DNA of 64,000 bases from Mytilus trossulus. Taxonomy: Eukaryota. Location: the NCBI RefSeq assembly GCF_036588685.1, contig NC_086379.1:58652001-58716000 (forward strand), given 5' to 3'. The stretch's first letter is position 1; each line of letters starts with the position of its first letter. The notes under the pieces were generated by a model that ran no database searches, had not been told where the DNA came from, and saw only the letters and a list, made by a program, of their open reading frames with translations. Positions 6,390 to 53,080 of the stretch are shown one piece after another. A program made the position numbers and the translations under genes.

Positions 6390-7582
6390 GTTAAAGTCAC
6401 TGAAGGCGTTACCAATATGTTCCCTTCCTCAGTTGGAGTAAAACAAGGCTGCATTCTAAGTCCTACCTTATTTTCTTTTTATATAAATGATTTAACCTCA
6501 ATGTTTGATAACACATGTGATCCTGTAACATTACATGACATAAAATTGTCTAGTCTTTTATATGCTGATGACTTAGTATTAATTTCAGAATCCTCAGAAG
6601 GTTTACAAAATTGTCTAAACAAGTTAAATACTTATTGTGAAAAATGGAACTTGACTGTCAATCTTGACAAGACAAAAACAATGATATTTAATAAAAGTGG
6701 TAAAAAACTTACAAAAGACCAGTTTGTATTGAATAATGAATTAATTGAATGTTGCACAGAATATAAATATTTAGGTATACTATTCAAGCCATCAGGAATT
6801 TTCACTAATGCTGTAAATCTCCTATGTAAAAAAGCTTCTAAGGCATTGTTTTGTATTAAAAAAAATACTCTACTCAGATAAGATGGATGTTTCTTCCCAT
6901 ATGAAACTATTTAATTCTTGTGTTAGTCCAATATTACTGTATTGTAGTGAGATATGGTCGCTAAATATTGTGAAGAACAACAAAACTCTTGAATCTCAAT
7001 ATTTATCTATGGAATCAGTAAAACTCCAAATCAAATTTGCGAAAGGTCTTCTAAATGTTAATTCAAAGGCAGTAAATACAGCTGTATTAGCTGAATTGGG
7101 AATGTACCCTATTGGTATACAGGCCCTTAAGTCTTCTATAGGATTTTGGTTACATATTTTAAAGTCAAATGAAAATGAGTCTTTATTATATAATGTTTAT
7201 AAAGCTAACAAGCAGTTAAATGATGGATTTGCTTCAAAAGTTAAAATGCTACTTTCAAAATTAAATTTCACTCATGTTTGGGAAAATCAATGTACCTTCT
7301 CTAAAAAACGATTACTATTAGCCGTCGTGAAGAAGCTCAATGAAAATTACATTATATTTTGGAAAAATTGTCTCTTTAATGATGAAAATTCAATAAATGG
7401 AAATAAACTAAGAACCTACAGAAAATTTAAAGTTAAGTATGAACTAGAAAAGTACCTTTTATTGAATTTAGATAAAAATGTTACAAAAAATTATGCTAAA
7501 ATAAGAATAAGTAATAGTATGTTGGCTGTTGAACGTGGAAGATACAACAAAACAGCTCTAGAAAATAGAATATGTCCTTTAT
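6390..7582 (+). mobile_element. 5'-truncated LINE (RTE-X-like), 5' portion; reverse transcriptase and C-terminal region, interrupted at 7582
   Basis: GVKQGCILSPTLF and LLYADD RT motifs; YCSEIW; AVERGRY...RICPL. One frameshift in an A-run near 6860. The frame continues at 52554. Confidence 0.9.
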
Positions 7583-7678
7583 CAGTCCAGGCGATTATTT
7601 ATCCAAGTAATATAACGCATATCAGTAATATTACATGCAAAAATAATGTGGCTTATATTACAGTTATTTGTAATATAG
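7583..7678 (+). repeat. Left TIR plus subterminal GTAATATWAC boxes of the giant element
   Basis: CAGTCCAGGCGATTATT at 7583-7599; GTAATATAAC at 7607-7616; GTAATATTAC at 7625-7634; partial boxes at 7654 and 7670. Confidence 0.9.
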
Positions 7679-8149
7679 TTGATTAGAAAGCGTTATCTCC
7701 CTTTACTCATAGTCAAGTTTGAAATCTTAATGTAGCACTCTCTGTATAATAGATTTTGATACATTGATATACACACATTTTCAAATTAAGAAAAGGCATA
7801 TGACCACATATAATGGTAAATTAAAAATCAGAAACAAATTAAAAACAATAAAAAGCCTCAAAACAACAAACGCATAAGCAAACTTATTTTGGCTTAATGT
7901 TTAAGTTGATTTACAATTCAGTCAGCCATGGACCAACGGACGCGACATATCAGAAAACGGGAGCGATGAGAGATTGGTTTTTAATTAGATTGGTCATGGA
8001 CACATATCATTATATACATGTACAACTTTCATGATTTTTATCTTTCAAAATTTGAAAATATTTTTTTTCGATAAAATGTCATAACAATGCGCGAAGATGT
8101 TCTTGATTAAAATTTATACATGAATTAATAAAACATCTTAAATAAAAAT

Positions 8150-10450
8150 CCCATTAGTCCGACAACCATTATTCCGACAGCCCATTACTCCGACAGCCCA
8201 CTATTCCGACAACCCATTACTCCGACAGCCCATTATTCCGACAACCCATTACTCCGACAGCCCATTATTCCGACACTGCATTTTTCTTATGTGTATGGGT
8301 AAATTTTCTCTAAAAAAGACCAACTCCGTTCTCTGTAATATTTGTGGTTGTCCGTTTTGATCCCAATTATTCTTTCCATGCGGGATATAAGTCTCAGTAC
8401 ATTGGAATTGATAAACATGCTTATTGCAACTGCTCAGTCCTTACCCTGTTCCCTCTTTCGTTTTACGTGTCTGGGTATTTTATTTTTCTTTACATTTCAT
8501 TGTTTGTGTGTCCACTCTCAGTCGGTGCTGTTCTAGTTCGCTGTGTTTTTGTGTGTGTCTTGATCTACCTTCTTTCACTAGATCGTCGGTTACCCCCTTT
8601 CGCGTATCAGGGGAGTGAGGTTTCATCACTTTTAACTACATAAAGAAATATATCGATGTTGGATAACACTACCCGTCCTCTTTGGTCGCAACACTTTCTA
8701 CCCCTTGTATCACTCATCTGACATAGCCTGAGAGATGACACTCAATTTATTTTAGTTATATCAATTTTATATCCCGAGCTTATTTCAAAATCTAGAAAAC
8801 TATGCCTCTTTTATAATGTTTGAAGGAAGTGCAGGACTGATGATTTACAACAAAACGAAAAACAAATATGACGGACATGAACATTGCCGTAACTTCTTTT
8901 TCTTTTAAAAATATTCACGAGGAAAAGTGATATCGGGTCGGTGACTGTGTATGACATAGAAATATACAGTCAAGTATTTTGACTGTTCAAATAGAACGAG
9001 TGCAGTGTAAAAGCCAATAACAACTAGTAAGAAATCTAAGACAATGTGTGACATTCTTGTCCTGCTTGTGTCTTTCTCAAATTGTCTAATTGTAAAAACT
9101 TGCTAAATTATGTGTTTTGTGGCAAACTTGACACTTATTTTTCATTTAAAGATTGTTTTCAAGGGGGGAAATATTGAGATACAATGTATCATTGATTTAA
9201 AGGCAGGAAGTTCATATGTTAATTAAGAATCGGTGCTCACCCATTACATTAAGAATTGAAAATGCCAGATATTCAAAAAATCGTATTGTACAGCTGATAA
9301 AGTTTAGGATGAGCGTCATTTTTCAATCGAATGCTCACATTATCAAAATTTGAGGGAGGAACTCAGGCTTTCAGCATATTTAGTCTAGCACATGTCAGAA
9401 CTTTGAAAAGTTAGCCATGCTAAATATGATAAATATTCGATGTATACACAAGAAAACTTTACTAATAAAGGAAACAAATGATGATTATATTGATAGTTCT
9501 TTTGAACTATATAGTACATGGTTTGATACTGACTGTTATTTGATATCAATGTGCTAGTTTTTTTTCTATTTTGTTTTGCCTCTGATTGTGACTGAGGCTT
9601 ACGGTGTTATAAAGATAATTATATCATATTATTACTATGATATATTAGTATTGTAAAGTCTTAATGTTGACCCAATCAGTATACCGCCGCTTCGCAAAAG
9701 TGGGAATATACTGTTTTACCTCTGTCTGTCCGTCCATTCGTCCGTCCACTCGTCCGTCAGTTCGTCCTTCCGTCCCATGGATATTTTCGTTGCATTTTTT
9801 TCATGAACGACATTACAAGGATTTCTGATAGGTTTATTGAAGTCGACTGTATCGTGTGATATGTTTTCAGAATCATTACTGAACAAATTCCTGTTTACCG
9901 AACACTTTTCACATGACGGCCAAGTTGACAATTTTCGTCACATTTTTCGCAGTAACTACAATACAATGATTTTTCAAGGTTTACATAAGTCACTATACGG
10001 TGTGAGTTTTTTTCAGATTCACAACTCAACAACGAAGTACATGTATTTGTGCGGGAGCATCATCAGTAGCACGCACCATCACTGGTTGTTCTTGAGTTAT
10101 ATACTGTTTATATACCCTTTAATTTGAAAGTGAAATAATATTTTCTGTTATATTCTATATACAGATTTCGAATTGAGTGTATAGAAAGTATTCGAACTAC
10201 CCCAGCCTTATGTTTATACGGAGTTATTTCTTAACATATATTATTACATATCTAAACGTTATTATACAGACAGACAAGTTTTATTTTACCCTGATACCCT
10301 AATACTTGGCTTGATAAGTGTCGGACTTGTGGGTTGTTGGTGTATTGGGCTATCGGAGCAATGGGTTGTCGGACTATTGGGTTGTCGGACTAATGGGTTG
10401 TCGGACCAATGGACTGTCGGACTAATGGGCTGTCGGAATAATGGTGTGTA
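8150..10450. mobile_element. Non-autonomous element with inverted 16-bp tandem subterminal arrays
   Basis: (cccattaYtccgacaR)n at 8150-8276 and its reverse complement (Ytgtcggactaatggg)n at 10320-10446. Confidence 0.7.
9220..9360 (+). pseudogene. Decayed RTE-X-like LINE C-terminal fragment
   Basis: Remnants LRIGAHPL..RIENARY and DERHFSIECSHYQNLRE parallel the C-termini of the two LINEs in this window. Confidence 0.55.
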
Positions 10451-11653
10451 ATCTCAACGATCAGCATGCCAGATATTTCTGTTACTGAAAATTTTCAAAA
10501 AATAAAACTGAACAAGCATATTGTAAAACGAAGGACGTAACAAATAAAAATAATTCTTTATAAATTATACAGATCTGAATCGCAATTTTGGTCTCTTCAA
10601 TTTACTTTAATTTCACCAGGAACACCACGTAAACTTGCAAATCGGATGACAAATAAACAACAAATTTCTATTGTGAGATCGATATGATTTAGTATTACCA
10701 TATCAACAGTCCAGCATCTATGCCCGAGAAAACACATCAAAATGATGTTGGGCTTATCATCTGCATCACTTAGAAAATACCTTAAAACAAATTAAACTGT
10801 CATTTCAATTAAAATTTGCAAGTTGACAGAAACCACATGTTTTGTTAACCTGATTTTGAAGTGATAATTGTTGGCCAAATGTATTAATAGTAAATACACA
10901 TCAATGATTCTTAATTGTGTCCTTTTTAATAAATTATGTGTTAAGTTTATTTACAAAAAAGGTATAATTTGAATTTTGAAGCTGAAATAGAAAATAAAGT
11001 CATTTAACAGAGAAATTAACAACCACTTTCATGTTTGAAATATTTTTTATATCTTTAATGTACATGCAAATTATAACCAACATGAACAAACAATAAAATT
11101 GAATTATTATACATAATCTAATAAAAATATATCATATATATATGGCATAAAAAGTTAACAATGATAAACCATATTTTTCTTTGAATAAAAACAAGGTGAA
11201 AATGAAAAATTGAATGATTGCATAATTTAATGTGCTTATTGTCCAGCAACACATATTACATTCATATTAAGTATAAAAACATCATTTACAATGTAAATGA
11301 ACAATTGAAATAAATACCCAACTAATACTAAAAATGTTTTCAAAGATTTAGGAATACCCTATTGCTGACAAAAATGCAAATTTTTAAATTGTAATAATAT
11401 TGATAATTCTATGTAAAGGCAAAACATAAGATCTTGCATTTTAACTTGTTGTTTTAGTTTAATTCTTCTATGTAGATCCACTTAATCCAAAAAAAAGTTT
11501 TGATACCTGTAACAATTATCCTATAAGTATATAATGACAATTTGAAGTAAATAAACAATATAGCTTTATCATTATGCAAATGAACACATATAATTGGAAC
11601 CTTTCAGGAAAGGTCCATTCTTCATCTATACAAAGAGCATTCAAAGCAACTGA

Positions 11654-13100
11654 CTACTTGGATTTAACAGGCGTAGATGTGGTCATTCTTTTTTTTCTTC
11701 TTCCTTTTTGTGGAGTGTCTTCCATACGCCTCTTTCGGCCAATTATTTCACTTACATTCCCTTTACTATCTGGACCAAAGTAATATTCTACTTCGTTGTC
11801 TTCGGTCTTTCGTAGACAGTCTTTTCCTAGGAAGTTTGGTAATAAATCCATAGGGTTTCCAGCAGTAGACAGATACTCAATTTGCAGGTTGATTATATCT
11901 GCAATCCTTTCAATTGCTGACTCCGGTTGCAACCACAACTGTCCGCTCCTCAAAGACTTGCTGTATACGGGGTCAGTGTTCTGGTTTTGGTGTTTACTAA
12001 TCATAGTTGCTTTTCGCACATCATCAAAGGAATTCTCTCTGAATTCATGGTTTTTGGACAATATAACTTCTTCATAAACATCTTATAGGTTGGAGTATCA
12101 ATTTGGTAGATGTTTCTGTTACCCTTTTGAAGTAATTTTGTTCGGAAGAAATCATTATTAAGGAACAAATTAAGCATTTTCATAAAATTTAGGAATAAAA
12201 TCATTCCCACCCATGCAGAGTACAATACATATATGAATAGAAATTTTCTTTGCAATGTCAACATCTTCAAAATGGCTGTGAAAGAATTCTATTAAAGACA
12301 TTATATTGTAAACATCAATCTTTTTGTTTGGTTTCTGTAATACGACAAATACTGGGTGGCTATATTTCCCTTGTGCAAAGGGCCAGTTGTCTGAAAGTGC
12401 AAACATATGAATCGGAATGGCATCTATATCTCCTGATGTAACGATGCTACATGCTGCTTTTGACGGAGAAAGCTATGCTTTGCACATACACAACCAGTCA
12501 ACTTGAGACATTTCAGCTTCACCTTTTCTTTGGTGTATGTCATTTAGATCTTGTATAATTGGCTTAGGACACGTTTTCTTGAATGAACATTGTATTGGTA
12601 TAGTATAGTTCTGACATATGCATTCTACACTATGTTCACATGGAACAACCTTCATATTCAATTCACTGTCAATAAAATAAAATCAGCCCCTATTTCAAGT
12701 TGATTCGCATTAGCAGCCAAATAAGTACTCATGATGGTCTTTCCTTCTCTGGTAGTCACAATATCTTCTTTTCGAAATTGATTCTGGTTTATCATCTCAT
12801 GGGATGTTCTCAGATGAGCAATGGTTGCTTTTGTTTTTTTAAAGTTCTCTGTTGGTGTGTAGCTGCCTTGAAGGTATCTGGTGTAAAGGAATATTTTTCC
12901 TCACAAAGTATAAGTCTTTCTGCTGTTGGGAATTGTCGAAGGATTGGTTTTATAACTGCATTTTGAACATACTTTATATACTGTATGCCTGAGGTAACCT
13001 TCGTTTTAAATTTAACACCAGCATGTACATATATCCATTTATCTGGTTATTTCTGTACTTGAGTGGTTATCAAAAATTTACACGCTTAGCTTTTGTTTTA
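11654..13100 (-). pseudogene. Decayed XPG/FEN1 (PIN-like) 5' nuclease gene, AcademX-type
   Basis: Motifs in the expected order across frameshifts and stops: RLILCEEKY...K...R, KGEAEM (~12509-12526), SIVTSGDID (~12422-12448), VLCMGGNDF helix-turn-helix motif (~12197-12225); basic NLS-like C-terminus. Confidence 0.75.
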
Positions 13101-13334
13101 AACATCTGTTTTGAAGCAATATTATCTGTCCCTAATCAGTTGTTGATGACAGATTTATGTATCTACTTAACCATTTTATAATTGAGAGAAGATATGAAAT
13201 TTACCCTGTGTAGGGCTTAGTTTGAAGACTGTCAAAGGATTCATGGTTATATGACAAGGCTTTCTAACTAACTATACCGATATGTTACTACCTCGTTACT
13301 ACACAGTGTTTCGCTCTTTGTTGAAGGCTTTATG

Positions 13335-16260: not shown

Positions 16261-17912
16261 GTGCAGATGGCCAATAATAATAACGTATTATAATGAAACA
16301 TACATCAAATGTTATTATATGATTATAACATTGTTGATCGCCTATCTGTCGGTCTGTCTGTCCGTCATGTCGAACAATATTTTGTCATTAAACTGTGGTG
16401 AATTGTTTTTATCTATTGACGTAAAATACCTTTCGATTTTTATAAATTTTAGATTTATGTTTCCTGGTTGTAAGGATTTTATTCATAAAAATGAGGGAAT
16501 TTACATGTTTTCTGGTTTGCTTTCAACAATTTTCATGAAACTTTAGTGAATTGTTTATGTTCCCTTTCGATTTAAAAAGAAATCTCCTGATCATAATTTT
16601 TTTGACACTTTTAATTCACAAGAAAGTTTTTTTTTCTCCCAATATTTCGGACAAAAACTAGTTATCATTTGGTTATTTGTTTATGCAGTATCTATTGAAA
16701 TAATATCCCTTTTATATAAATTTCTGATTCGACATTGCGGAGTTATGCAATATTGTCAAATTGGAAAATGTACTGCCAAGTTGTAAAGACAATGTAACAA
16801 TTAAGTGTTCACGATTAAACTCCCAAATTAATGAATAACTTCATATTTTTAATGTGATCGCAAAATTTTGAGATGCTATTAAATTTGAAGTGTCGACGCC
16901 ACATATATTTTTATCACACTCAGAAAGATTAGTAAGATCTTGATACACCTCACAGATTTTTCATTAATTTCATATTTACAGTGTGAGTGTTCTTATCAGT
17001 CTCGTCGAGCTCATTGTACGTGAAGGTCACTTTTTCATCCAAGAAGAAAACCAACCACCAAAACGATATTAGACTTGAAATAAAAGCATTGTCTAAAAAA
17101 AATATAGTTTTTGTCAATTTTTACAAAACAACTTTGACCCTTTTATTGATATTTATAGATTATCGTTGATTATCTCAACGAGAATAATTTTCTCGCTTGA
17201 GCTGGAACAGCGAAAGTGAGAAAAGCAATCGAGTTGAGATGACCGATGATAATCTGTTTATCGCTATTTTACCTATGACGACGTTGTCAATTTCAATGTC
17301 AATTTCGTTAACAACGCACGTGGCGTCCTTAGTTTCTAGCGATATTTTTTCCATCTCAAGCGAGTAGCATGATATGAAAATTATCACAAAAAAAGATCAA
17401 AGGAAAAATGCACAAAATAGCGATAAATATATATATTAAAATTTTTATATTTGTATTTTATGTGTGTGTGTTTTAGGGCGAATTACATTTGCGCGCGTTT
17501 CGGGGATTCATTTATTAAATTACGCCGTTGCTCAATATTTATTGTAATCATGACATTTTTCCAGTAACACGGTTCATGCACACCCCTATATATGAAAATG
17601 TATCCAATAAAAGTATTATTCGAAGCTATAAAATATCTTCTGTGAGTGTAACTGCATCTGGTAAATTTGAAGTGACGACACTTTTTCTGTTTTATCAATT
17701 TGATAAGATCAGTATGGTGACTGGTTTATACTATTTCGCAATTTCGCCCTACATATTCAATAGGGCGAAAACGCTTAGTAAAAAAAACGCGAAATATTTT
17801 TTCTTTACGATTTCTCGCTTCTGCGTTTTCATGTTGTCGACCTCGCATTTTCGGTTTTGCGTTTAAGCGTTTCGCCTTTTGTTATTTGACAAATGCTAAT
17901 TGACATGGAACT

Positions 17913-18065
17913 CAGGCGCGGATCCAGAAGGGGGGGGGGGGTGGTTCCGGGGGTTGGAACCCCCTTTTTGGACGATCAATGCATTTGAATGGGGACATGT
18001 AATCGGAACTCCCTTTGCCCAGGGTTAGAACCCCCCTTTTTTTAAAATGGCTAGATCCGCCCCTG
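17913..18065. mobile_element. Short MITE (CAGGCGCGGATCCAG...CTAGATCCGCCCCTG)
   Basis: Imperfect TIRs; flanking direct repeat gaact at 17908-17912 and 18066-18070. Degenerate relative at ~26878-27014. Confidence 0.75.
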
Positions 18066-20143
18066 GAACTGTTCTATAGGAAGAAAGAAATAGGTATATA
18101 TATATGAATCGTTACCGTATTGTCATATCCACAAGGTATTTTTTTTAAGCTTGCACCAAAAACGACATCTTAGCAGTCTCCATTGATTCTTTTTTAAATC
18201 ATATATACGCAATCCAATGTACAAAACGCTAGACGTATTACGCAACTGAATAATGAACACGCGTAACGTCACTTACATGTTTGCAAACTGTAATGCATCA
18301 ATTTATTAAGCGAAATACATTGATATTAAAGAAAGATCTTCAGGAAAATACAGCATCGATGGACAACAGAAATTAATGTGTTTCTGATGAATGTTTATAG
18401 ACTTCCAGTGAGGTAAGAGTTGTTCTTATCCGTATTGAAGACCTCATTGTGACTTTGAGATAAAAAGCAGCAATACACATGTGCCGAGAGATTCATGTTG
18501 CCTTTTAACCATGTTAATATTGTGATAATGAACGGGGATTGTACACATGCAGTATGAGTCAGAAAACATAAGAAGAACCTACGCAATAATTCTAAGCATA
18601 ATTTGCCTGATTCTCATGTTCGATTCCGATCTTAATTGTTTTTCCTGTCGAAGGTCGGAGGTCCTTTAAATATTTCGGCTTCCACCACTAATATAAAGTT
18701 ACCTCCATGATATAACCAAGAGTGGTATTAAAAAAACAACAGTATACACAAAACAAAAAAAACAAAAAAATACTTAAGCAAAGTTTTCAAAGATTTTTTT
18801 TAGTAACAACCGTTAGATAAATATTTAGTACTATTGTAAACATTGAAGGCATTTGATGGAATATAATCTCAATCTAAATATGGAAACATGGATGGACTTT
18901 GATGGGAATTAGCCAATTAAAGTACAGTTTAGGAATGATGCAAATTTTAGTTGATAAAGAAATGCACATATCCAAATTAAGAGGAATGGTGAATTTCTAG
19001 TAAGAGAAGTCAAAAGCGAAATGAAACGATATAGGCCCTAACTGTATGAACTTATTAAATGTATATACGATCAGTAGTTCAACTTTACAAAAAAAACAGA
19101 TTGAATATCGCATTGTAAACTCTTAGATAAAATTCCTGAATGTTACTGAGAAGAAGAGTGTCGAAAGTACCTCTTTGTCTGATAACTTTAACCGGGCCCC
19201 CTATTTAGTTGTAATAGTATTTTATTGTGAAAATTGTTACATCAATATTACAAAAATGGCAGTTTCATTAGAATTGGAAAACAAGTCAATTTCAACTTTT
19301 ATCAATTTCTCTCCCATTTTTCATCACTATACTGTACAATTTCTAACTCATTTTTTCTCAAAAGGTAGTACACAGAGTACAAGTTAAAGTGCAATCAAGT
19401 CATTCTGTTAGAAGTGTTTTGAAGACGTATTTTATTGGCCAGCCGGACAAACAGTACTAGGACTATTTGTCCGGCCAATACAATGCGAATGTCAAGTATA
19501 TTTGTGTGTGCTCGTAATATAATCTTCAATACCACCAGGGAAGTAAATGTTTGTAATCTGTATTGTTATGACCTTATCTTGTTACTGGTACTTTAAAATT
19601 GTTGTTTTCTTCATACTATTATATAGTCCAATGTGAATAACGAATAATTAGAAAAAAATCATATATACTAGTATCCCATATTTTTTTTTATATAAGAAGG
19701 AGAAAAAAATACTTATAAAACAATTAAACTTGGGTAGTGTTTGACTCCTGCATTTTAAGTTAACGTAAAGGATTTTGTCTAGCTGAAAAAGGTACATAAT
19801 TATTATATGTCTTAAGCTGTCGAAGAGACATAGACCCCTTGACATAAAGTCACCCCACTTTTTATAATCCTATATATACAACATCCCCACTTCCAAGTTT
19901 GCAACCTCAATCACCCCACCCATTATACCATTTCGAGAGCTACTTGTAAGATTCATTTTCGGAATGTAACTAAGCTAAATTTTTATTCAGTTAGACATGC
20001 ATTTATAAATGCCTTTCTCAACTACTCTTGCTTTGAACGTCTTTTCCACCATTTGCACAGCTATAGTTAGCCGAATAATTTTGTAAAACTAAAGTTCGCC
20101 GATCAATTATCAAAGTTGTTTATTTTTCCTTGTGACTTCAATT

Positions 20144-20585
20144 AGAATCATATTCAAAACAGTGTGGTCCTGGCCATTGATTGACGACCTAAATTATCCC
20201 GTTGACTGGGACAGATTAGGTGAACGTTTGTCTGTAACGACCATTGCTCACTTCTTACTTATTATAGAATTTAAACTGTGCGGTCACCACAGGTTCTTAA
20301 CGCCTTTAATAATAAAATAATTCGAAAAATTATTCAGGAATAACCTTTATGTTTTGATTTATATCATTGATATAAATCAACACATCGTATTATTCCGGAT
20401 TCGATTTTCGAATTGCTTTATTTAGGTGTTGAGAACCTTTGGTGACCCCACAGATTCAATGTCTTTAACAAGTACATAGTGAGCAGTGATTGTTACCGAC
20501 AAACGTTCACCTAATCTGTCCAGTCAATGGGATAATTTAGGTCGTCAATCAATGGCCAGGACCACACTGTTTTGAAAATGATTCT
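20144..20585. mobile_element. Foldback-type MITE with ~110-bp or longer TIRs
   Basis: agaatcatattcaaaacagtgtggtcctggccattgattgacgacc... mirrored at 20478-20585; possible ATT TSD. Confidence 0.8.
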
Positions 20586-37900: not shown

Positions 37901-40900
37901 AATTAACACTAAAAATATGCTCGACATATTCAAAAAAATGTCGAAAACCGGACGGTCATCTTTCTTAGATCAACTTCTCCCTCTTTTAACACAAAATGAG
38001 ATTGCGTCTTTAGCAATAAACCTCGGATCAAAACAAGCAAAACTTCTAAAAGCAGACGCTGAACTTATGTCTCAAGATTCCCTGGAAAAGACCAAAATAA
38101 TAGATTTCAATCCAGATGAATGGCTTTCAAAGCGAAACAATGTATTGCTTAACTTCCTAAAAGGAATCACACTGTTCGATCCTAACAGATCGACCGAACC
38201 ACAGAAAATAACGCTATGTCGTGCTGTAGAACACGTTTATGGTTTAATATCGCAGAAATTGGTAGCACCACTTTCCTTTCTTTTGTCTCTGAATATATAT
38301 GCAAGAACGAGCAGCCGGTCTGTTATTGACTTAATCGCAAAATCATCGCCCAGTGGATGCTATAAAACATTACAGAAATGGATATCGAATGCAGGAAACG
38401 AAGTCCAGCCATGTCCACAAAGACCGTTAATGTTCGGTTTCGATAATGAACAAATTATAGGCTACAAGAGAGGTATAAGTGCGGAAAATCGCTCTAGGTC
38501 ATCTATCATAACCACTCAAGTACATGTTATAATGAAAAGTTCAGCTGATAATTTAGATATCCAATATTTAGAAAATCTAAAACCGAAAAATTATTTTTCA
38601 ATAAATCATTTTGAAGACAAAATTAAGCACGCAGAACGTTTCGATCTTCAAGAAAAGCAGCGAGTAGCTGAGGTTGAAAAACAAGAATTTAAAAAAATTG
38701 TGAGCAACATTCAAGACAACGATTCTGATTACTACCAAGAACTCGAATCGATTCACTTGGAACATCTTCAACACTACATTCAGACTGCCATTGATGCAGT
38801 TATTACAGATCGTATGACATCGCGATCATCAACAGACGATTTTGAGGATGAAATTGACAAACAGGATTTCCATGAAAGTAGGAAAAAGGATATCCTCATT
38901 TGCACTTTATGTGGGAGCGAAAATGCCAGGAAAAAATTAATATGTGAAGGATGCAAGAAAAAAAAAGGTATAAAGGAAGCAAGAAAAAATAGCAATTCGC
39001 AAACAACAGCAAAGCCTAAGAAAAAAGAAAAGCCTGTGTTGACAGAAGAGCTAAATTCTAATTCCACAGAGAGAAAAGAAAACACAGCAAATTATTCAAG
39101 ATTTTCATATGTATCCACCAACCATAAAGGGCCTACTGCAGTAAGCATGGGAATGCCTACATTTCAGAACCCAAATAGCAGTGAGTCTGTCGCAATGATA
39201 CTAAGACACATTGGAATGCAAGCTGGCATTAAGCGATACGGTAAAGATAATGATAGAGACTGGACTTTCGTCTGCTGTGACGGAAGACCACATAGTCTCT
39301 TCCAGAAGATATTGAATGAAGCTGTTATCTGTACACATTGCATTAATAACAAGGCGTGTTCAGATAAAGCCTCTTTTACATCAAAAGAAGAGTACACGCA
39401 ACACCACAAACGCCAACATTCCGATTTACAAAGTGCGTATCAAAAGGAATTCGACTGGCTTTATCTTAGAATAGGCGGGGGTCATTTTGAAATGAATGCT
39501 GTCAAGGCCTTTTTTGAGTTGAACTGGATACCATATCTTGAAAAGATGTGCGAGCTCATGGGATTTAACAGCCCAAATGCGAAGAACTTTGCTAAAACAT
39601 GTAAGGATCATCATGTAGCATGGCAACTTCTTCTTACATTTCACACTTCTGCTATGCGCGAAATGGTTGTACCATTTATTAAGCATATAGAAAAAAACCA
39701 AGGAGATTCCTCAGCAGCTAACTTTATATCTTTTTATAAAACAGTATTGTCTCATATTCCTAGACATCAATATTTACATTTACAAGTATGCAGATTTTCG
39801 CAGGCATTGATAAATTTACGTATGGGAATGAGGCGCAATAATGCCAAGCTAGTCGCTAGTGCAAAATTTCACTTAAAAGAATTGTTCTACGGTCGACATC
39901 ACCCACATTACCAGAGCATTGAACTTTTTGACACCGTTCAGTACAATACAATGCCAAATGTGGTGAAAACTATTTGGGATAACAACATATCTTTTACGGT
40001 GAGTGGAGACAGCTCAAAAGGACAAGATTTGGATTTTCTGCTAGAAGAAAAAAACAAAAATGTGAAACAATATCTGCCGTCAGGATCAATTCCGTCCGAC
40101 GAGACATGGAAGGCAATATGTTGCAATCTAAATTTTTTGAAAAATTAGAAAGTAAAGTTTCTATTCTCCTTGGGTTAAAAAATCCTACTGAATTTGGTAC
40201 GAAAGAACTTGACATTGATAACGCCATTAACAGTTTTAGACCTGTATTACGGAGGTACATTTCATCAAATGAGAAAAGCTTTGTCTCACTTAAAGGACTA
40301 GAACTACATCCAGATTTGTTACAATTTTTACCAATTTCTACTGGAAAACGTTTGCAAAAAATTAAATCGGAGATTTTATGCCAACCCATAGAGATTGTTA
40401 ACAATGAACCCGTATATGTTACAATAAATGAAGAAACCGATTATCAACACAAGCTTTCAAAGGAAAGATTAAGCATGAAAATACAGAAACTTATCGACCA
40501 ATTATCATCAGATGAACTTTTGCAGAGGCATTATCAAACTATTTTGGATTCCTTAAAAAGTCCCCTAATCAAACGTGATGTCTATGTAACACTTTATTTT
40601 GAATTGAAAGACGTGGTAAGCAGCACAACATCAGTGTTCGTGGAGTAGATGGGAACGAGAACTATGATTTCATATATTATACATCATACATGGCTAGGTA
40701 AAATAAGTACAATAATAGCTTAACTGTTAAAAAAACCCGTAGTTATGCTTATTGTGATGTTTGTGTGTATAACTTATTACAGAATTTACTAGAAAATTCT
40801 AGTGAATTTTGTTATAAGTTTAACACATAAACATATTTTTTCGTCAACAAAAACGGAAAATGTCTATTGGTGATATAAACAAGTGTTATTTCGATTTTGA

Positions 40901-43900
40901 AATTTATATATACACTGATGATTAAGGCCGAATAAAATATCATGTATTTCTAAAGTCACTAAAACTACAAATCAACATTAAAAGATAATACTTATTTATT
41001 TTTGTTTAACGATAGAAAAATTTGATATAAAGATAATTATCAACAAAATCAATTGCACATAAAACAATAGATATGTAAAATCATACGACGATTAGCGCGG
41101 TGAAATTATCAGTTTTCTCCTGGTAAATGTACTTTCTTTTTCAAATCCCAATTCAGACACAAACCTCAGTAGCTGTACCAACATTCAAAACACATGATCG
41201 TCCCTCTGCTCATTGTTATACATTAAAGTTTTTAAATGTTGTTTTTAATAACGTGAAAAGAGCTAAAGAGTAAAAAAGGATACATAGAATAAACGATCGC
41301 TCATCATTTTGCTCATAAAAAGTATATGTTATACGATTAAAAACTTAAGACTAACGAAAAAATGTAACGTTTTATAATTAAAAAAAAATAAATAATGTTC
41401 TATTTTTTCGATGACTATATATGTGCTATGGTCTTAATATGATTTTTTTAACATATAGCAAAAAACAAATCCATCTATACCACTGTACACGCTGTGGATA
41501 TAATTTTGTTTACACAATTCTAAAGAAATGTTATTGATTACAAGAATGTTCAATCTGACGAATAAAAACATGCGTTTAAAATAATTAACCTACTTTTTGA
41601 CATATATGTATAATCTTTATCAAACGATACTCACTTATATATATATACGATCTGTAGTAATTTATATATGCATGGTCTTTATTAATTATTTATAAAATCT
41701 TTTTGTATTTCTAAATTAGGTATGATTCAGAGAATGATCCTTCTGAGGATGAATTTAACATTGATGATGTTGAATCGTCTACTCCAAGAAAACCTAGAAA
41801 ACCCGGCGAAAGAAAAACTTATGATACGCTGCAGAAAAAGAAAACATCAGAAATATCCAATGAAAGAAGAAAAAAATCGACTGCTTTGCGTGGTATAAAA
41901 CAACAATTTAAAAGACTTAAAGAATTGAAACACCTAAATGTGACTTTTGCGTTCGTGTGCTTCGATTTGACACAACAACGTCAAACTATTAAGAGAGATG
42001 GGAAAGGAGCCTATTATGATAATTTGCTCAATGGTAGACCTATTGTGGATAAAAGGGACATACAAAGAAAAAAACAGAGGGATGGGTTGACGGAAACGTA
42101 TTTCCCTCATGAGGAAAATTTAAGAGAAACCCAGTTCATAACACCTACAAAGTTGTCGTGTGGTCCAGGAGTGTCCCGAAATATTGCCAGAGAGCAGATG
42201 GAGACACTGCAAGATGTAAACATTCAGCCAGGTCATGAGAATGACTCTTACTCACATGGTATGATTACTGTCATAGTATAACGTTATGCTGTTTATATTA
42301 CTACTCTAAATTATTGCTTTCATTTTTTTTAATACACGATCTATTTTTAGAAAGTGTTGCTTCATGGAATTGTGTTTAATCAGGTATTAATGAATTCCAT
42401 AAACATTTGATTTTAAGAAACGTATATACCTTCATTATCGTTTGCAAGAATTTTGCTTACTTCGCCATGTTCACATATTACAGACGGAAACCTTTCATTT
42501 GACAATTATTAAGATAAGAACTCAAAACAGTATAATCAATTGCAGGACGTCCGATGGTATTACATGTATTACATGACAAGCAAATATAGAGAATCAGTTA
42601 TTTTTGTATCTGCATATATAATATACCATATGACAACATGTACTAATATGGATGTATTGATTAACAATTTTATCTTAGATAAGCTGAAATAATCTGAATA
42701 TTTCCATTTTTTTTTTACTCATAGATGTAGCAACTCCACAAAGGAAGGTCACAAGAAAGAGAATTAGGACCGTAAAAAGTAAACGTACGAACATTATTGT
42801 TGCAGTAGCTGATGATGATAGTGACAATAATGATGTTGATGTGAATAACGATTCAGCTGTTGATGCTGTTGCTTTTGATGCTTCGAAAAATAATAATGAA
42901 AATGAAGATGGAGATATCGACGACGTTGACGACGGCGCCGATGATGACGACGACGATGAGGATGATGATGATGATGATAATAATAGCGATGAGGATGATG
43001 ATGATGATAATCATAGCGATGAAGATGATGATGATGATAATCATAGCGATGAGGATGATGATAATGATAGCGATGATGATGACAATAAGGATGACGACGG
43101 TGACGACGACGACACCAATGATGATGATGATGATTTAGCTGCTACTACTGATGATTTTAAATTTGACGACGACGATGACGACAGCACTGATAACGTGAAT
43201 TTACCACGACTTTACAGAGTAAGTTATCTTAATTTGAATTTTTGAAATACTAAGGCTTTTCTATCTCAGAAATATATGACCTTAGCTTTATTTGGGAAAA
43301 CTTTTAGGTATCTTGGTCCTTAAACTCGTACTTTATTTGGCCTTTCTGATTTTAAACCACCGAAGATAAATTCATAGTAGTAAAAATAATGTATAGTGGA
43401 AAAACTATTGCATATTATTATATTTTTTTTTCAATAACAAAACTATATTATAACAATACATTGAAATGATTTGATCTATTACAAAAATATCTTTTTCATA
43501 CATTTTTGGACATACTTCATATACACATGCATTCGATGCGGTGACCAATTTAAAGAATAAAAGTAAAGAGAACTGGAACAAGAAAACAATACGTCACTTC
43601 GTATTATGAACCTAAATAGTTTGCCAATACAAATTAAACAAACAAAATTAAGTTAATATAACAAGTCGTTTTTACCAGAAATTTCACAGACTTGAAAAGG
43701 CATATGCATGCTAGTGGTACCTACAAAACATAGACAAGAATTGAGCATACTTCTCCATTATTATTGCAGAATAACTTATCTAATGTGAAAAATACAGATC
43801 TATCGAAAAGAGGTAAGTCTTTTAATTACAATAAATGTGCGTCCCTGAGAGAGGTATCTGAATCATTTATCTAATTTTGTCTTAAGAGAAAAGGTATGGT

Positions 43901-46045
43901 AAAATATAAACGACTTAAACTATTACGTCGAAGAACAGACATAACTTATGTATGTGCCTGTCCCAAGTCAGGAGCCTGTAATTCAGTGGTTGTCGTTTGT
44001 TTATGTGTTCCATAGATATAGGAAGATGTGGTGTGAGTGCCAATGAGACAACTCTCCATCCAAATAACAATTTAAAAATTAAACCATTATAGGTTAAAGT
44101 ACGGCCTTCAACACGGAGCCTTGGCTCACACCGAACAACAAGCTATAAAGGGCCCCAAAATTACTAGTGTAAAACCATTCAAACGGGAAAACCAACGGTC
44201 CATACTTGTTTTTCGTTCATTTTTTTACTTAAATAAGGCCGTTAGTTTTCTCGTTTGAATTGTTTTACATTGTCTTATCGGGGCCTTTTATAGCTGACTA
44301 TATGCGTTTGGGCTTTGCTCATTGTTGAAGGCCGTACGGTGACCTATAATTGTTAATGTTTGTGTCATTTTTATCTTTTGTGGATAGTTGTCTCATTGGC
44401 AATCATACCACATCTTCTTTTTTTATATAACATCGGCATTCGAAAAAAAGACAAAAATGAAAATAAAATTAAAAAATTGAAGTTGTAGAAACCATTAATT
44501 CGTCATATTACGCACTATATAGTATACTCAAAACGTAGCTGCTCAAGAAGTACTTAGTTTGATTCTTCTTTGTGTGTGGAGCAGGATCTGTTTACTCTTC
44601 CGGGCCACCTGAGAACACCCTCAGTTTTTTGTGGGGTTCGTGTTGCTTAGTCTTTAGATTTCTATGTTTTGTCGTTTGTACTATTTTTTAGCTGTTTGTC
44701 TATTTCTTTGTTAGCTATGGCGTTGTCAGTTTATTTTCGATTGATGACTTTGACTGTCTCTCTTGTATCTTTCGTGCCTCTAATGTACATTTCTTAATTG
44801 TATTTTATAGCTAATGATGACAAAATGTATTTTACTGATATATGTTCGACCAAGTACGATATAATTGATTAAATCATTCATGCCTCTGACAGTTGAATAT
44901 ATGCCATTTGTTAAAATAAAATTAACGGTCCGAATTTTCTTGCAACAGATGCGCATTTGGACAATACATGTCTCTTCAGTGATGATCGTGGTCAAAATAT
45001 TTGAAATCCAAAGCTTATATAAAAGATGAAGAACTATAATCCAAAAGGTCCAAAAGGTATAGCCCAATCCGTGAAAGGAATCGGAGCTTTGCATGAGGGA
45101 GATACATTCCTTAATTTATAACAATTTCTAATATTTTGTTACAGCAAATTTTAATAACACAAAAAATCTGTTCATGCCAGTACTGAAGTACTGGCTACTG
45201 GGCTGTTGATACCCTCGGGGACTAATAGTCCACAAGCAGAGGCATCGACCCAGTGGTAGTAATAAAATTAACGGTACCAATTTTCTTTAAAATGTTTCTA
45301 TATTAATTGTCATACTTGAAAGAAAAAAAATCTAAAGATTTTTTTTATTTATATCCCAACAGAAAAACTGAAAAAATTATTCAACGAAAGAGCCAAAAAA
45401 ACAGAGCTGAATGATGCCGAATCTGATCATAGTCACGATAAAGACGGTAGCACCTCTACAGAAGGTAATTATTTCTCATACTTAACAATTCGATCATAAA
45501 AAATGTAGTTCGTATGGTTAAAATAGGATATGTATTGAAAGCTCACTAAAGATGTCTGTAAAGCATATGTGAACTTTCTTAGTTGTAGGGGAAATCATAA
45601 GTTATATTCGTCAATTTTTCTTTGCTAAACACTTGAATATGCACATTACGATGACGAAACTTTGGAAACTTCAACTTATTCATTCATTCACCATGTTCAC
45701 TAGCAATTGTATTTCGGTGAATCCACTTTTCAAATTTCTGAATATAATATGAATATCTGAAAAAACTGCTTTAGGAAAATGTAAATTCATTTTCTCATTC
45801 GAAATTGATTACTTTCATTCGCTGTACGCGCCTCCAATATTGTATTGATCAAGAATATTTTTGAAAGAAACTACTTTGAAAACTTTATCATGAAGTTTAA
45901 TTAAAAAAAATATTTTTGCCGTTTTTCAGAAAATACCTGTCGGTTTTGGACATATGTGGACGACGAAGATCTTGAGGCACGAAATGCTTTCCAGCCTAAA
46001 ACTGGGAAAAGATGTAGAAAGAAGACAACGGTATTAGACATTTAA
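34945..46045 (+). CDS. Six-exon gene for a 442-aa basic/Asp-rich, probably nuclear protein of unknown function (exons 34945-34979, 41720-42258, 42725-43218, 43770-43812, 45363-45464, 45930-46045)
   Basis: All five introns are GT-AG with matching phases (2,1,0,1,1); joined CDS is 1329 nt, open, and ends in TAA; AATAAA at ~46279. Confidence 0.8.
37389..40648 (+). CDS. Transposase-like protein (~1086 aa if the frameshift at ~40135 is corrected): RAG1-N-terminal/Chapaev-like Zn domain plus Academ/DUF6589-like DDE core
   Basis: N-terminus LKTICRICG...EVFDVDIKEDQKEIHPTALC...FKPHNDDCKIC; candidate catalytic motifs FGFDNEQ, VCCDGRP, GGGHFEMN, HPHY, DFLLEEKN; extra C4 and C2H2 Zn motifs. ORFs 37389-40148 and 40106-40648 overlap at a T6 run. 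Confidence 0.85.
42915..43185 (+). repeat. Coding (GAT/GAC)n trinucleotide-rich tract with 27-bp higher-order units (poly-Asp)
   Basis: Repeated agcgatgaRgatgatgatgatgataat units inside exon 3 of the six-exon gene. Confidence 0.9.
44917..45287. repeat. Interspersed repeat bounded by direct repeats (aaaattaacggtMcVaattttct)
   Basis: The same ~22-bp motif occurs at ~44918 and ~45264; intronic. Confidence 0.55.
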
Positions 46046-47729
46046 ATTCATGAATTCAATTTAGGTGACACCAATTGAGTGGTATCATTAAATACAATTT
46101 GAAACTCTAGAATGCTTTTGTAGTTGTTTTATAGTATTTATTTTGTATATTTGTTCAATATAAGTAAAGTCGCAAACTTCATAAAAAAATTTAAAGTAAT
46201 TATTTATTTTATCTTTATTTAAAAGAACGTGTTTTATAAGTTATTTTGTGAATCTGATAGTTGATATAAGCTTAAAACAATAAAGACAACGGCACCTGTT
46301 TAGTTTATTCACCAACAACATTACAATGTGGATGTAGTTAATTATAATATCAATTACAGTACCAAATGTATAAATGACAAGCTGTCCTAGCAAGTTATGT
46401 AATAAAAATAAACTCAAGCATTAACAATTTAGTGGTAACAAGGTCATTATTGTTTACAAATTGTAAATTTCGGTTAATGGTTATTATTGCTGTGAATAAC
46501 TTGAAACATGCGTATCCGTTTACAGTTTTTTATATGATTTCTAATGACTCTTAAAAGATTTTAAATACGCATCAATAACAAAATTGTTAAGTTTTAATTT
46601 TAAGATATCGACAAAGTATTTCAGTCCTTGTGGTTTCTTATTAAAAATCAAGCTTCATTCAACAATAACTTTCGTATTTTTGTTAGGACAATTAGCTACT
46701 TGCATATATTAATGGAACTTAAATAAAAATCAATATTGAATTTTTAAGTTCGTACGAATTAATTGTAAAAACGGGATTATATAAAAGATTTTAATAAAAA
46801 AAAAAGGAAAAAAAGGAGAAAATGAATAAAAAAAAATCATTAAATGCAACAAACAGCACAATGAGCGACAGCAAGTTTTTACTGTCATGTTTATACTTTA
46901 ACCAGTCAATTAAACTTAGTTTATCTAGTAATTGAATTGAATATAAAGAAGAAAATTATTATATATATCTATTACTTTTGATTTATTCATTTGCCTCAAA
47001 AAATTATCTTATTTCTTACCTTAGATGTGTATTTGTATTATTTTGTGTAAATATTATTATCCTTTGCAATATGTACAAGACACATTAATCATAATTTGTA
47101 CAAAATATAATATACATATGTGAAGTTGTTTTTTTGTTTTGTTATTTGTTTATTTGTCACATTTAAATTTAAGAAAGATCTTTCCATAAGTATTTTTGAT
47201 GCATTGTTAATAATTGTTATGCCATGTTAGACTGAATGTGCTGATTGATTTGAAATAAAGTATATTATATTTCATTATAAACAACATAGAAATTATCAAA
47301 TATTTTGCATCCAAGTATGAATTATTTTAATCAGCATATATCATATAATTAAACAATATATTTACACATTGTGTTTGATCAGTATATTACACACTTTGAT
47401 GGGGTTAAATACCATTAAATAAATCATTTCATTACCAGTATTTTTTTCAGCTATTTTCTATACATCCGCAGTTGTTTTTATTCTTATAATGGTATGACGT
47501 AATTGTAATCGTCGTCGTTGTCCCACGATAATAGTAAATAGTTTCTAATTAACAACTTGACTTTGAGAGTATTTATAAATCTCCATGAAGTTGATCCACA
47601 AGGTTCCATTCTTAAAAAAAGGAAAGTTGTAATTGATTCGAGGGTTCATGTGTCAGCTACTGAGGATAAAAGAGCACACGTACAATTCCACCTGGCAGAC
47701 CAATTATATCATAGTGTGGTTTCAAACGG

Positions 47730-47888
47730 TGTAGGCTGATTTTGAACAAATGGTATAAGAAAGTAATCTACGTAATGACCAACAAGTTCAGGTTTGGTGT
47801 AGGCTGATTTTGAACAAATGTGAAACCTGAACTTGTTGGTCATTACGTAGATTACTTTCTTATACCATTTGTTCAAAATCAGCCTACA
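47730..47888. repeat. Perfect 66-bp inverted duplication with a 27-bp spacer, in Penelope-like RT sequence
   Basis: Arms at 47730-47795 and 47823-47888; an arm encodes ELVGHYVDYFLIPFVQNQPT, resembling Penelope RT. Confidence 0.85.
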
Positions 47889-47914
47889 GTGGAGATCATT
47901 TTTAACATCTCATT

Positions 47915-48284
47915 AGAACTGTCAGAATAATCTGTCATAGAACTGTCTTAAACTGTGATAGAACAGTTATATACATAGAACAGTTCTACCTTAGAACTGT
48001 TCTAAGTAGAACTATCAGAATCAGAACTAGGTAACCTGATAAAATCAGCTCTAGGTAGAACTCTGAGGATCAGTTATATGGTAGAACTGTCAGTATCAGT
48101 TTTAGGGTAAAACTGTCTAAAACTATTCTTGTTAGAACTGTCTAAATCAGTTCTAGATAGAACTGACCAAATATATTCTAGGTAAATACTGTCTAGGTGT
48201 CAGGATCACAGATCTACAAACTGACATAGAACAGTTCTTCTGACAGATTCTGTTTGATGAGAGGTTAGAAGTTATCTTCACTGT

Positions 48285-48285
<1 letters not shown>
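47915..48285. repeat. Degenerate short-motif array (tagaactgtY)
   Basis: Many agaactgt / acagttct copies in both orientations. Confidence 0.65.
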
Positions 48286-48320
<35 letters not shown>

Positions 48321-48323
<3 letters not shown>

Positions 48324-48585: not shown

Positions 48586-48788
48586 TGATTTATACAATTT
48601 AAGCGAACGCTGGAACAATTTTAAAATTTCCAAACACACCGCAAAGACTAAAGAAATATGCCAGAAATAAAAATAGGTATTTACGATGTGAAATGGCACA
48701 ACTCTAGATTTCCAAAGGTTGTGACAGTTGAAACTGATCCACACCTAGATAGATTGAATGTTGATTGTTGCTATTTTCAGACACTAGT

Positions 48789-49516: not shown

Positions 49517-49524
49517 TGTATATA

Positions 49525-49770: not shown

Positions 49771-49859
49771 AAAATAATTAACTTGTGGCCACGATGTTAT
49801 GCAACAAGCATAAGGTGTCAATATCATTGTGTACACTAGATCCAGATTTCAACAATAAA

Positions 49860-51010: not shown

Positions 51011-52399
51011 ACTAGTGTCACAGAGCTATTCTAAGGCATTAGCTTTAAAAAGTAATGTTCATATATACATATTTAATATGCACAAGTTCACATATATATA
51101 TATATATATGAACACTTCCATTACATTACATTGTTAATATAGAGACACGTCCATTCTCTATCACTAACTATCTTCAATCCTCCCGAATCTCAACATTCAT
51201 CCACTTTTATTATTTGCTAAGGACTTTGCTACTTATATGAATTTCTCCAACATTAAATCGTCATTCATCTCCAGGTCACAGACGTTTAGGGACAGAATAT
51301 AAACAAACAGAAACATTAATGTATAATATACGGCTTCTAATTAGAAATGACTACAGCTTAAACACAGCGGAATCATACATCAAATTTAAAGGTCCATCCG
51401 ACAGGCTGCTAAAGATAATAAAAACAATAAATCTACAAATACTAAACACGCTTGACCATAGTAAATTAATATGGGCAATTAAATGCCGATCTATTATAAG
51501 AAATAAATGTGCAAGTTTCACCCTATGACAAGAGATCTATTGAAGAAGAATTAAAATGTAATTTACATATTTGATTATATAAAAAAAAATGTATCTTAAA
51601 ATGAATATCTCAAGCTAAACTAAAATGATGTCGTGTCCTTTAATGCAATGTGATATGCCTCGTGGTTGCATAGGAGTTTTTTTTATATCAAAATACTGAA
51701 ATCATTCCAACTAAGATGTTCCAAATCAATTAATTGGAAGAAATCCGAAGTAAAACTGAGACACTATAATACCTTACACACCCACCATTATGTGCGGAGT
51801 TAATTCATTTATATGAAATCAAGTTCGATTTATTGAAGTTTAAACATTTTCAAATATCATAAATATATCAATATATATATTAAACTTCATAAACTCATCC
51901 AAAAGTTACGTAAAATAAAAAAGATCCCTGCCACGACATAGTATATTTCAGTAAAATTGTTGTAGTTTAATAATTTTAAGGGAAACAACCAAAATCCATC
52001 TTATACCACATTCTAAGTAACCAAGAGTTATCTCCGCTGAAATATTGTTTTATTTTGATACACGGGTTTCTTTAAACATTTTTCGACGCTATACTATTAT
52101 CAAAATCCTTGCACATGATACCTTTCTAAAAAGCTACAATATATTTCTTCCTACAGAAATTACTTTGAAGACTGTGTTGAAATGCATTATGTCAAAAACT
52201 ACGACTTTAAGAGAATGACATGTCGGAAAAGCGTTTATTTTGTATTTAAACCTTTGATGCGGTAAAATGAATATTTTTTGCAAATGCTAAACTGAAAGTT
52301 GATCATTTCTGTATTAGAAAAGCTACTTGAGGTCAGTAACAATGATGTCGAATTTTACTAAAATGGTCGTCATAACTTAAATTACTTATATTCGTAATT

Positions 52400-52548
52400 T
52401 AGCAAAACTATATTACATCTTTTCGTAATATTGATTATTACGTCTTTTTGTAATATAGACGTTATATTACATAAAGCTGTAATATTACTTTATTATGTTA
52501 TATTATAGGTTTAAGTAATATTACTCTTTACAATAATCGCCTGGACTG
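52400..52548 (-). repeat. Right TIR plus subterminal GTAATATWAC array of the giant element
   Basis: AATAATCGCCTGGACTG at 52532-52548; boxes at 52515-52524, 52497-52506, 52479-52488 and 52461-52470 (18-bp period). Confidence 0.9.
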
Positions 52549-53080
52549 TTTATGCCATAAAGAGTTGGAAGATGAATTTCATTTCATCATTACATGTTCA
52601 GAAATTAATAAAACTAGGATCAAAATGTTTAATGAAATTTCTAATATTGTCCCCTGTTTTAATTCCATGAGTGAAGAAAATAAATTTGATTTTATATTTT
52701 CCTGCGAAGAATGTGATATTTTACTTATCATTGTTAACTACATAAGTGAAATGTATAATGAGAGAAACAATTATAATGTCAATATATGAACTGTGTAATG
52801 TATATTATAACATATTTTTTGATACATGAGCATAATATTTTAATACATAACTTTAAAGAGGAGGCATGCTGTCAAAACTAGTATTATAATTAATACTATT
52901 GATCTATGTTTTTGTTTTTCTTTCAATGCTACATGTTTGTAGTGTAACTGTTTATTGACTATCGTTTTGTAATTTTAATATGCCTGTTTGTTTGTTGTTT
53001 TTGTTGTGTATTTTAGTAACAATCCTATTGTTTGGATTTCAAACTAATAAAATTCTTATTCTTATTCTTATTCTTATTCT
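52549..53080 (+). mobile_element. 3' portion of the interrupted RTE-X-like LINE
   Basis: CHKELEDEFHFIITC... to stop at 52789; 3' UTR; AATAAA at 53046 followed by a (TTCTTA)n tail. Confidence 0.9.

Follow-up and report, generated by a model that had tools for sequence, protein, structure and literature searches.

A 45-kb DNA transposon with a RAG1-type zinc domain in its transposase, inserted into a LINE of the mussel Mytilus trossulus

The stretch of DNA considered here, referred to as the window, comprises 64,000 nucleotides of the 1.3-Gb assembly of Mytilus trossulus (C7:58652001-58716000). Within this window, a long interspersed nuclear element (LINE) is split by an insertion of 44,966 bp at positions 7583-52548, which with good confidence is a single copy from a young family of DDE-type (aspartate-aspartate-glutamate) cut-and-paste transposons of very large size. 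Copies of this family measure 32-45 kb and those of a sister family 21-23 kb. The element encodes a transposase of about 1085 amino acids featuring a RAG1-type zinc domain and a DUF6589-type core, which is most probably Academ-related, and additionally carries a spliced orphan gene. The locus is composed as follows (window coordinates, strand in brackets where one is assigned):

6132-7582 (+): 5' part of the interrupted LINE with a reverse-transcriptase open reading frame (ORF); the remainder follows from 52554
7578-7582: left target-site duplication, TTTAT; paralogous LINE copies have one TTTAT
7583-7599 (+): left terminal inverted repeat of 17 nt, CAGTCCAGGCGATTATT; its first 10 nt are common to the sister family
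7600-7700 (+): left subterminal region with palindromic boxes of the GTAATATTAC type at 7607-7616 and 7625-7634
37389-40648 (+): single-exon transposase gene with an ancestral length of about 1085 codons, broken in the window copy
41718-46045 (+): second gene, spliced, encoding an acidic orphan protein of 423 amino acids (RefSeq 'PFC0760c-like')
52461-52531 (+): right subterminal region with boxes of the GTAATATTAC type at 52461, 52479 and 52515
52532-52548 (+): right terminal inverted repeat of 17 nt, AATAATCGCCTGGACTG, according to the junction reading
52549-52553: right target-site duplication, TTTAT, according to the paralogous LINE copies

Both junctions can be read directly. On the left side, the LINE flank runs as ...ATATGTCCTTTAT up to position 7582 and is followed by CAGTCCAGGCGATTATT, and on the right side AATAATCGCCTGGACTG is followed by TTTATGCCATAAAGAG, with LINE sequence again behind the second TTTAT. 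The ends of the element, written as CAGTCCAGG, are identical at 17 of 17 positions in inverted orientation (CAG...CTG) and continue imperfectly with 72% identity over 65 nt. Exact GTAATATTAC boxes occur three times in the window, in each case no more than 90 nt away from one end of the element, and the boxes near the ends are conserved in the sister family. RVT_1 matches in the flank ORFs at 6132-6881 identify the flanks as LINE, and a genome search using the 300-bp flank on the left side of the insertion revealed at least 40 LINE copies. In all 11 paralogous LINE copies that were read, the empty site was found, i.e., ...ATATGTCCTTTAT directly joined to GCCATAAAGAG..., with a single TTTAT and continuing into the sequence of the right flank of the window. 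This constitutes direct evidence for the insertion and for its 5-bp duplication. Moreover, six other left ends and five other right ends in the genome match the 300-bp ends of the element with 99-100% identity and the same terminal base. The boundaries are therefore not due to chance, as the same ends recur elsewhere and are cut at the same base. A preceding interpretation of the window made from the letters alone (in the following, the sequence-only reading) had described a giant DNA transposon that splits a LINE, terminates precisely in CAG...CTG and is flanked by a 5-bp duplication, and had predicted an empty site with an intact LINE; the junctions, the recurring ends and the empty sites bear out both. 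Its bounds of 7578-52553 describe a real insertion but take in both copies of TTTAT, which do not belong to the element itself.

The genome carries at least four full copies of 32-45 kb in unrelated flanks. Apart from the window copy, these are:

C8:68240906-68274000: 33.1 kb, flanked by TTTAA on both sides
C10:42614724-42646868: 32.1 kb, flanked by ATATA and TATAT, which are shifted by one position within a TA run
C6:75317365-75357233: 39.9 kb, with mismatched flanking 5-mers

The window copy can be aligned with the C8 copy over 32.3 kb at 98.4% identity and with the C10 copy over 25.1 kb at 98.1% identity, in the same order in both cases. Four full occurrences and one partial occurrence of the transposase gene were found in the genome. 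Interior segments outside of the nested insertions described below match copies of the family exclusively, and about 25 kb of element sequence is without counterpart in the remainder of the genome; tandem repeats account for a minor share of the element. Since the copies are colinear in unrelated flanks and their interior matches family copies only, explanations by segmental duplication or by a composite element fail, and the stretch in the window is one mobile unit.

The sister family, whose members feature a length of 21.3-22.7 kb and 68% identity in the transposase gene, shares the first ten bases of its ends, CAGTCCAGGC, with the element in the window. Its copies are flanked by TATAA/TATAA, ATGAA/ATGAA, ATGTG/ATGTG and CTATA/ATATA, the last pair matching at four of five positions. 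In the family of the window copy (family A), sorting of the ends by their flanking 5-mer, with six right ends, revealed the duplications TTTAT, TTTAA, TACTA and GTACA. Of these, TTTAT and TTTAA belong to colinear end pairs; TACTA and GTACA, and likewise TATAT, are matched between ends which are inverted or located on different chromosomes. Altogether, the 5-bp duplication was observed in eight insertion events over the two sister families (seven perfect pairs and one pair with a 4/5 match) and is hence a family trait. The insertion targets are AT-rich and follow no strict consensus. Further paired ends with different 5-bp duplications, for which the sequence-only reading had advised to search, are present in the form of the TTTAA pair and the TATAA, ATGAA and ATGTG pairs of the sister family. 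Proteins with at least 90% identity to the transposase occur in M. edulis and M. galloprovincialis; the family is therefore common to the species complex.

The N-terminal part of the transposase features a zinc domain of the RAG1 type (residues ~17-147), in which the Pfam domain RAG1_imp_bd (PF12560) was detected at residues 53-147 with an E-value of 5e-12. Likewise, a profile of 34 relatives matches residues 102-269 of mouse RAG1 and the nuclear magnetic resonance structure of its zinc domain (21wb), with E-values of 5e-10 to 8e-10 for the zinc-domain chains 6oem and 21wb; among the structures of the PDB, this profile found the N-terminal domain alone and nothing of the RAG1 core. The RNase H-like DDE core comprises D352 (in FDNEQ), D631 and E886 (in LEExN), with the fold spanning residues 342-925. 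Between D631 and E886, just behind the second aspartate, a C2H2 finger is located (C648-x2-C651 and H672-x4-H677). In alignments of 34 and 48 sequences, D631 is invariant throughout, and D352 and E886 are invariant in the smaller and at least 90% conserved in the larger one. C648, C651 and H672 reach at least 90% conservation in both alignments, H677 in the smaller one only.

A HMMER search against 1.8 billion representative sequences revealed 1415 relatives (representative clusters). Named relatives originate from Mytilus, the annelid Owenia and Branchiostoma, and the Mytilus entries are called 'RAG1 importin-binding domain-containing protein'. A word-based homologue search returned eight matches with the protein and the same eight with the profile. 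Among the 48 aligned relatives, Pfam assigned DUF6589 to 18 and the RAG1 domain to 15, and none of the 48 matched XPG, a helicase, DUF1280, Transposase_21 or DUF1258 (E <= 0.001 for the latter families, which belong to the CACTA/Mirage/Chapaev (CMC) group). Matches to THAP or Tnp_P_element were found neither in the transposase nor in these 48 relatives. In the genome of M. trossulus, DUF6589 occurs at more than 100 loci, many of them with ORFs of about 1000 amino acids. DUF6589 was also observed in open frames of 1816-2171 amino acids and thus of twice the usual length (e.g., C14:48545013, C13:51389895 and C7:38715296), and these possibly represent relatives bearing further domains, e.g., a helicase or a nuclease.

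The models predicted by AlphaFold2 are confident, the predicted local distance difference test giving 84 for the complete protein and 93 for a model of residues 569-930. With the whole model, the P-element transposase was matched with Z 9.6, and retroviral integrases, Hermes and ISCth4 with Z 8-9; a Foldseek search of the full model against the PDB gave nothing below an E-value of 0.001. For the C-terminal half on its own, the P-element transposase is the best structural match (6p5a_A, Z 10.3, 242 aligned residues, root-mean-square deviation 4.9), followed by Hermes (Z 5.7), RAG1 (5.2-5.5) and BbRAGL (4.0). Judged from the profiles and the predicted fold, the transposase is a RAG1-type zinc domain joined to a DUF6589-like DDE core and not to a core of the Transib/RAG kind.

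The transposase genes of the individual copies are damaged. In the window, a 1-nt deletion near 40132 causes a frameshift, leaving an ORF at 37389-40148 and a second frame open to 40648. The gene of the C8 copy (ORF L038:490-3537) is continuous over 1015 codons and ends with a stop at codon 1016, which corresponds to a glutamate codon at window positions 40433-40435 followed by 70 more conserved codons, so that 70 residues are lost. In the C10 copy, the region from 40161 to 48321 is deleted, which truncates the transposase. Relatives of 1082-1244 amino acids are in line with an ancestral protein of about 1085 amino acids. Due to the frameshift and the four later nested insertions, the window copy is to be regarded as old and non-autonomous. 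Between copies, the transposase gene diverged by 0.7% versus 1.7-2.1% for the rest of the element. The substitutions in it comprise 9 synonymous and 13 non-synonymous ones, and the resulting ratio of non-synonymous to synonymous rates (dN/dS) of about 0.35 suggests that part of this divergence arose under selection. In the RefSeq model XP_063404446 (C10, right of 42646868), the truncated transposase of the C10 copy is joined to a trypsin domain. This domain was rejected as cargo, being not encoded in the element, and the model points to a read-through or a chimera with a neighbouring gene.

The exons of the second gene were located by mapping the RefSeq protein of another copy to the window (41718-42269, 42724-43236, 45362-45487 and 45929-46042), with the first two codons coming from an exon further upstream. 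The gene is present in the C8 copy and deleted from the C10 copy. Its protein features no Pfam domain and is not similar to the gene models of the longer relatives. Homologues were restricted to Mytilus copies in a word-based search, which was probably swamped by the acidic low-complexity tract. In gene models of M. galloprovincialis, the second gene is fused to the transposase.

Four nested insertions are private to the window copy and contribute about 7.7 kb of the 45 kb. Each has a duplication of its own and an empty site in the C8 copy. Together with other segments of the interior, they are located as follows:

8150-10444: segment between inverted arrays of a 16-bp repeat (8150-8275 and 10319-10444), missing from the C10 copy
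10707-13231: nested unrelated transposon of 2.5 kb, left end CAGTCCAGC, duplication TCAA (4 bp), absent from the C8 and C10 copies
16971-20682: segment of 3.7 kb, present in the window copy and for the most part also in the C10 copy, missing from the C8 copy, probably by deletion in C8
21138-23584: nested element of 2.4 kb, 43-nt inverted ends starting with CAGTGTAT, duplication TTCAT (5 bp), private to the window copy
25159-26171: nested insertion of 1 kb, 8-bp duplication AGATAAAT, private to the window copy
30511-32210: nested high-copy element, inverted ends of ~175 nt, duplication of ~10 bp in an (AT)n run, private to the window copy
44915-45287: one unit of a high-copy satellite of ~350 bp, intronic in the second gene and found in every copy retaining the region

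The transposon at 10707-13231 occurs in full length also at C5:71714837 and C9:25379210 and is represented by many short, internally deleted derivatives, with 1393 candidates at first look; no similarity of it to the transposase family was detected. It is non-autonomous, and its end CAGTCCAGC shares the first eight bases with the giant element, yet its duplication is 4 bp long. The element at 21138-23584 represents another CAG...CTG family with a 5-bp duplication, and the one at 30511-32210 shows Mutator-like features. The satellite forms long tandem arrays elsewhere, e.g., at C1:74915473-74919605 and C7:1460608-1464599. Downstream of the element, the ORF at window positions 61522-62703 encodes several zinc fingers of the C2H2 type (Pfam zf-C2H2 and zf-H2C2_2).

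A gene for an XPG/FEN1-like nuclease was considered at 11654-13100 but showed no Pfam match even at an E-value of 10 and no match to a PDB chain; XPG_I has only three matches genome-wide, none of them in the window. The three-gene content assumed in the sequence-only reading has to be corrected to two genes, since this stretch lies in the nested, copy-private transposon and lacks any similarity to XPG/FEN1. Beyond the transposase domains, a Pfam search of the 88 element ORFs of at least 65 amino acids yielded nothing credible, including no kelch/RAG2, XPG or helicase match. Likewise, a viral, tyrosine-recombinase or polymerase module was not found in the element.

The Academ superfamily (Academ-1/AcademX) is reportedly treated in work by Kapitonov and Jurka from 2010 and by Kojima from 2020. 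Regarding its sequence features, the element described here can be assigned to an Academ-related lineage with slightly more than even confidence. Both have in common the DDE cut-and-paste mode and a large transposase of about 1000 amino acids. A survey of bivalve transposons found Academ to be abundant, diversified and expanded in this group and contained only two curated CMC elements, CMC being rare in bivalves (PMC10294476). The presence of DUF6589 in the relatives of the transposase and at the numerous loci of the mussel genome argues for Academ, as does its occurrence in rust fungi and Mucoromycota, two groups from which Academ has been reported; in its distribution over fungi and animals, the DUF6589-type core resembles Academ. 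In addition, the curated Academ-1 consensus of Anadara, which begins with TAGTCCAG and ends with CTGGACTA (PMC10294476), comes close to the ends CAGTCCAG...CTGGACTG of the element, the terminal AGTCCAG being common to both. The nested transposon with the end CAGTCCAGC features a duplication of 4 bp and thus of Academ-typical length.

Several observations weigh against this assignment and against an active element. The 5-bp duplication is outside of the ranges published for Academ, which are 3-4 bp for AcademX and 9-10 bp for AcademH (PMC10045372), and neither an XPG nuclease nor a helicase is present in the transposase, the 88 element ORFs or the 48 relatives. Further differences from Academ are the RAG1-type zinc domain, which is not reported for it, and the size of 21-45 kb, as the curated Academ elements of bivalves measure 5.6 kb on average (PMC10294476). 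The 12-mers coding for the conserved EFDW motif were absent from the searched part of the curated Academ-1 library, which is a weak negative as the library file is incomplete and line-wrapped. Moreover, the assignment is an indirect one. The CMCT clade (CACTA/Mirage/Chapaev/Transib) would be a fit as well, given the zinc domain, the C(2)C and H(4)H motifs, ends of the CA..TG type and a duplication within 2-5 bp (PMC12730594). Finally, the transposase is incomplete in all three copies that were read (window, C8 and C10), each being damaged differently, so that autonomy at the present day is unproven.

Nevertheless, the length of the duplication and the sequence of the ends vary within superfamilies and even within Transib (bioRxiv 10.64898/2026.08.26.747230), and a 5-bp duplication alone therefore makes no new superfamily. 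The atypical duplication, the lack of nuclease and helicase and the exceptional size leave a new superfamily unproven. The sequence-only reading had considered an undescribed lineage. The combination of ends and duplication is indeed not of a textbook kind; the lineage is unproven, with the 1415 clusters already deposited in databases as uncharacterised proteins. A lineage that cannot yet be placed takes the share of probability remaining beside Academ-related and Chapaev/CMCT elements. More tentatively, and with rather low confidence, transposases of the DUF6589 type could form a third lineage regularly bearing the RAG1 zinc domain, with a P-element-like core and RAG-like 5-bp duplications. 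Such a lineage would be large, spread across bilaterians and distinct from Transib/RAG as well as from Chapaev, and in mussels it would have grown to elements of 20-45 kb with private genes and with ends involved in inversions and a translocation.

The element might alternatively be a Chapaev-type member of the CMCT clade which shifted to 5-bp duplications and CAG ends. This is regarded as unlikely, although the zinc domain gives it some weight: within transposons, an N-terminal RAG1-like (Chapa/NZD) domain was reported to be retained only in Chapaev, besides RAG1 and RAG1-like proteins (PMC4411706; bioRxiv 10.64898/2026.01.24.700457). The CMCT clade is defined by CA..TG ends, a duplication of 2-5 bp and C(2)C and H(4)H motifs (PMC12730594), and the element with PF12560, both motifs, CA..TG ends and 5 bp is within this definition. 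In RAG1, however, C(2)C and H(4)H are separated by about 200 residues, whereas they form one compact C2H2 finger here, 20 residues apart. In favour of Chapaev, the zinc domain was also recognized in the Branchiostoma relatives (E 2e-11), and Chapaev was first described from the lancelet. The ends are CAG...CTG and the duplication measures 5 bp, in contrast to the CAC...GTG ends and the 3-4 bp of Chapaev (PMC4079192). Among the Pfam families tied to CMC elements, DUF1280 stands for Chapaev, Transposase_21 for CACTA and DUF1258 for Mirage (PMC3985635), but none of the 48 relatives matches any of them and DUF6589 was matched instead. In addition, the predicted core is structurally much nearer to the P-element transposase than to RAG1 (Z 10.3 versus 5.5).

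An affiliation with the RAG-like transposons (ProtoRAG/Transib) is suggested by the 5-bp duplications, which are typical of Transib and RAG, and by the zinc domain, which is homologous to residues ~100-220 of RAG1, but this reading is largely refuted and highly improbable: the profile never matches the RAG1 core, RAG1 and BbRAGL reach Z 4.0-5.5 only versus 10.3 for the P element, no RAG2-like or kelch partner is encoded among the 88 ORFs, and the ends do not resemble the CAC heptamer.

With the P-element transposase of Drosophila (6p5a), the catalytic half shares a predicted RNase H fold into which a helical domain is inserted. Sequence identity is about 10%, however, and the element lacks a THAP domain, whereas the P element is about 3 kb long and features 8-bp duplications and 31-bp ends. 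As far as can be judged from the model, the resemblance is one of fold and not of membership. The movement of tens of kb as one unit, with genes other than the transposase inside, is a feature of further giant transposons of eukaryotes, which include Teratorn, Starships, Mavericks and the large CACTA elements of plants. Unlike these, a plain DDE transposase with ends of 17 nt moves 21-45 kb in the mussel families.

Besides the colinear pairs, three pairs of ends in family A have matching duplications and are not colinear. In two of them, both ends lie on C6 in inverted orientation, and the third has one end on C6 and the other on C10, involving C6:74894145-75357233 and C10:42614724-42646868 (L and R, left and right end; strand as sign):

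TACTA: L+ at C6:74894145 and R- at C6:75179322
GTACA: L- at C6:74917924 and R+ at C6:75357233
TATAT: L+ at C6:75317365 and R+ at C10:42646868

Furthermore, two left ends on C6 face each other at a distance of 23.8 kb. Such mispairing is compatible with a rearrangement by ectopic recombination or alternative transposition involving several copies, and also with mis-joins in the assembly. That the insertion is no single mobile unit and instead a segmental duplication, ordinary DNA bracketed by two small elements or an assembly artefact could be argued from these three pairs, from the ATATA and TATAT flanks of the C10 copy and from the difficulty of assembling repeats of 30-40 kb, but is very improbable, as four copies share the whole interior order, end at an identical base, are located in unrelated flanks, carry 5-bp duplications of their own and match only each other outside of the nested insertions, and as the sister family behaves likewise with three perfect duplication pairs.

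For the element as a large DDE cut-and-paste transposon, the following course of transposition can be proposed. The transposase would recognize the 17-nt CAG...CTG ends together with the adjoining GTAATATTAC boxes as putative binding sites, pair both ends and then excise the whole unit. Integration would proceed with cuts staggered by 5 bp, which would account for the 5-bp duplication. If defective copies such as the one in the window moved, the protein would have come from another copy.

In animals, a length of 1-6 kb is usual for plain DDE cut-and-paste transposons. A family moving 21-45 kb by means of 17-nt ends thus raises the question of how large a cargo DDE chemistry can carry, and would represent a candidate for a large-cargo vector system. 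Moreover, the transposase has a bearing on the origin of RAG1: of the 48 relatives, a diverse set from mussels, annelids and lancelets, 15 have the zinc domain next to a core unlike that of RAG1 and Transib. With regard to the mussels themselves, the mispaired duplications hint at elements that reshape their chromosomes.

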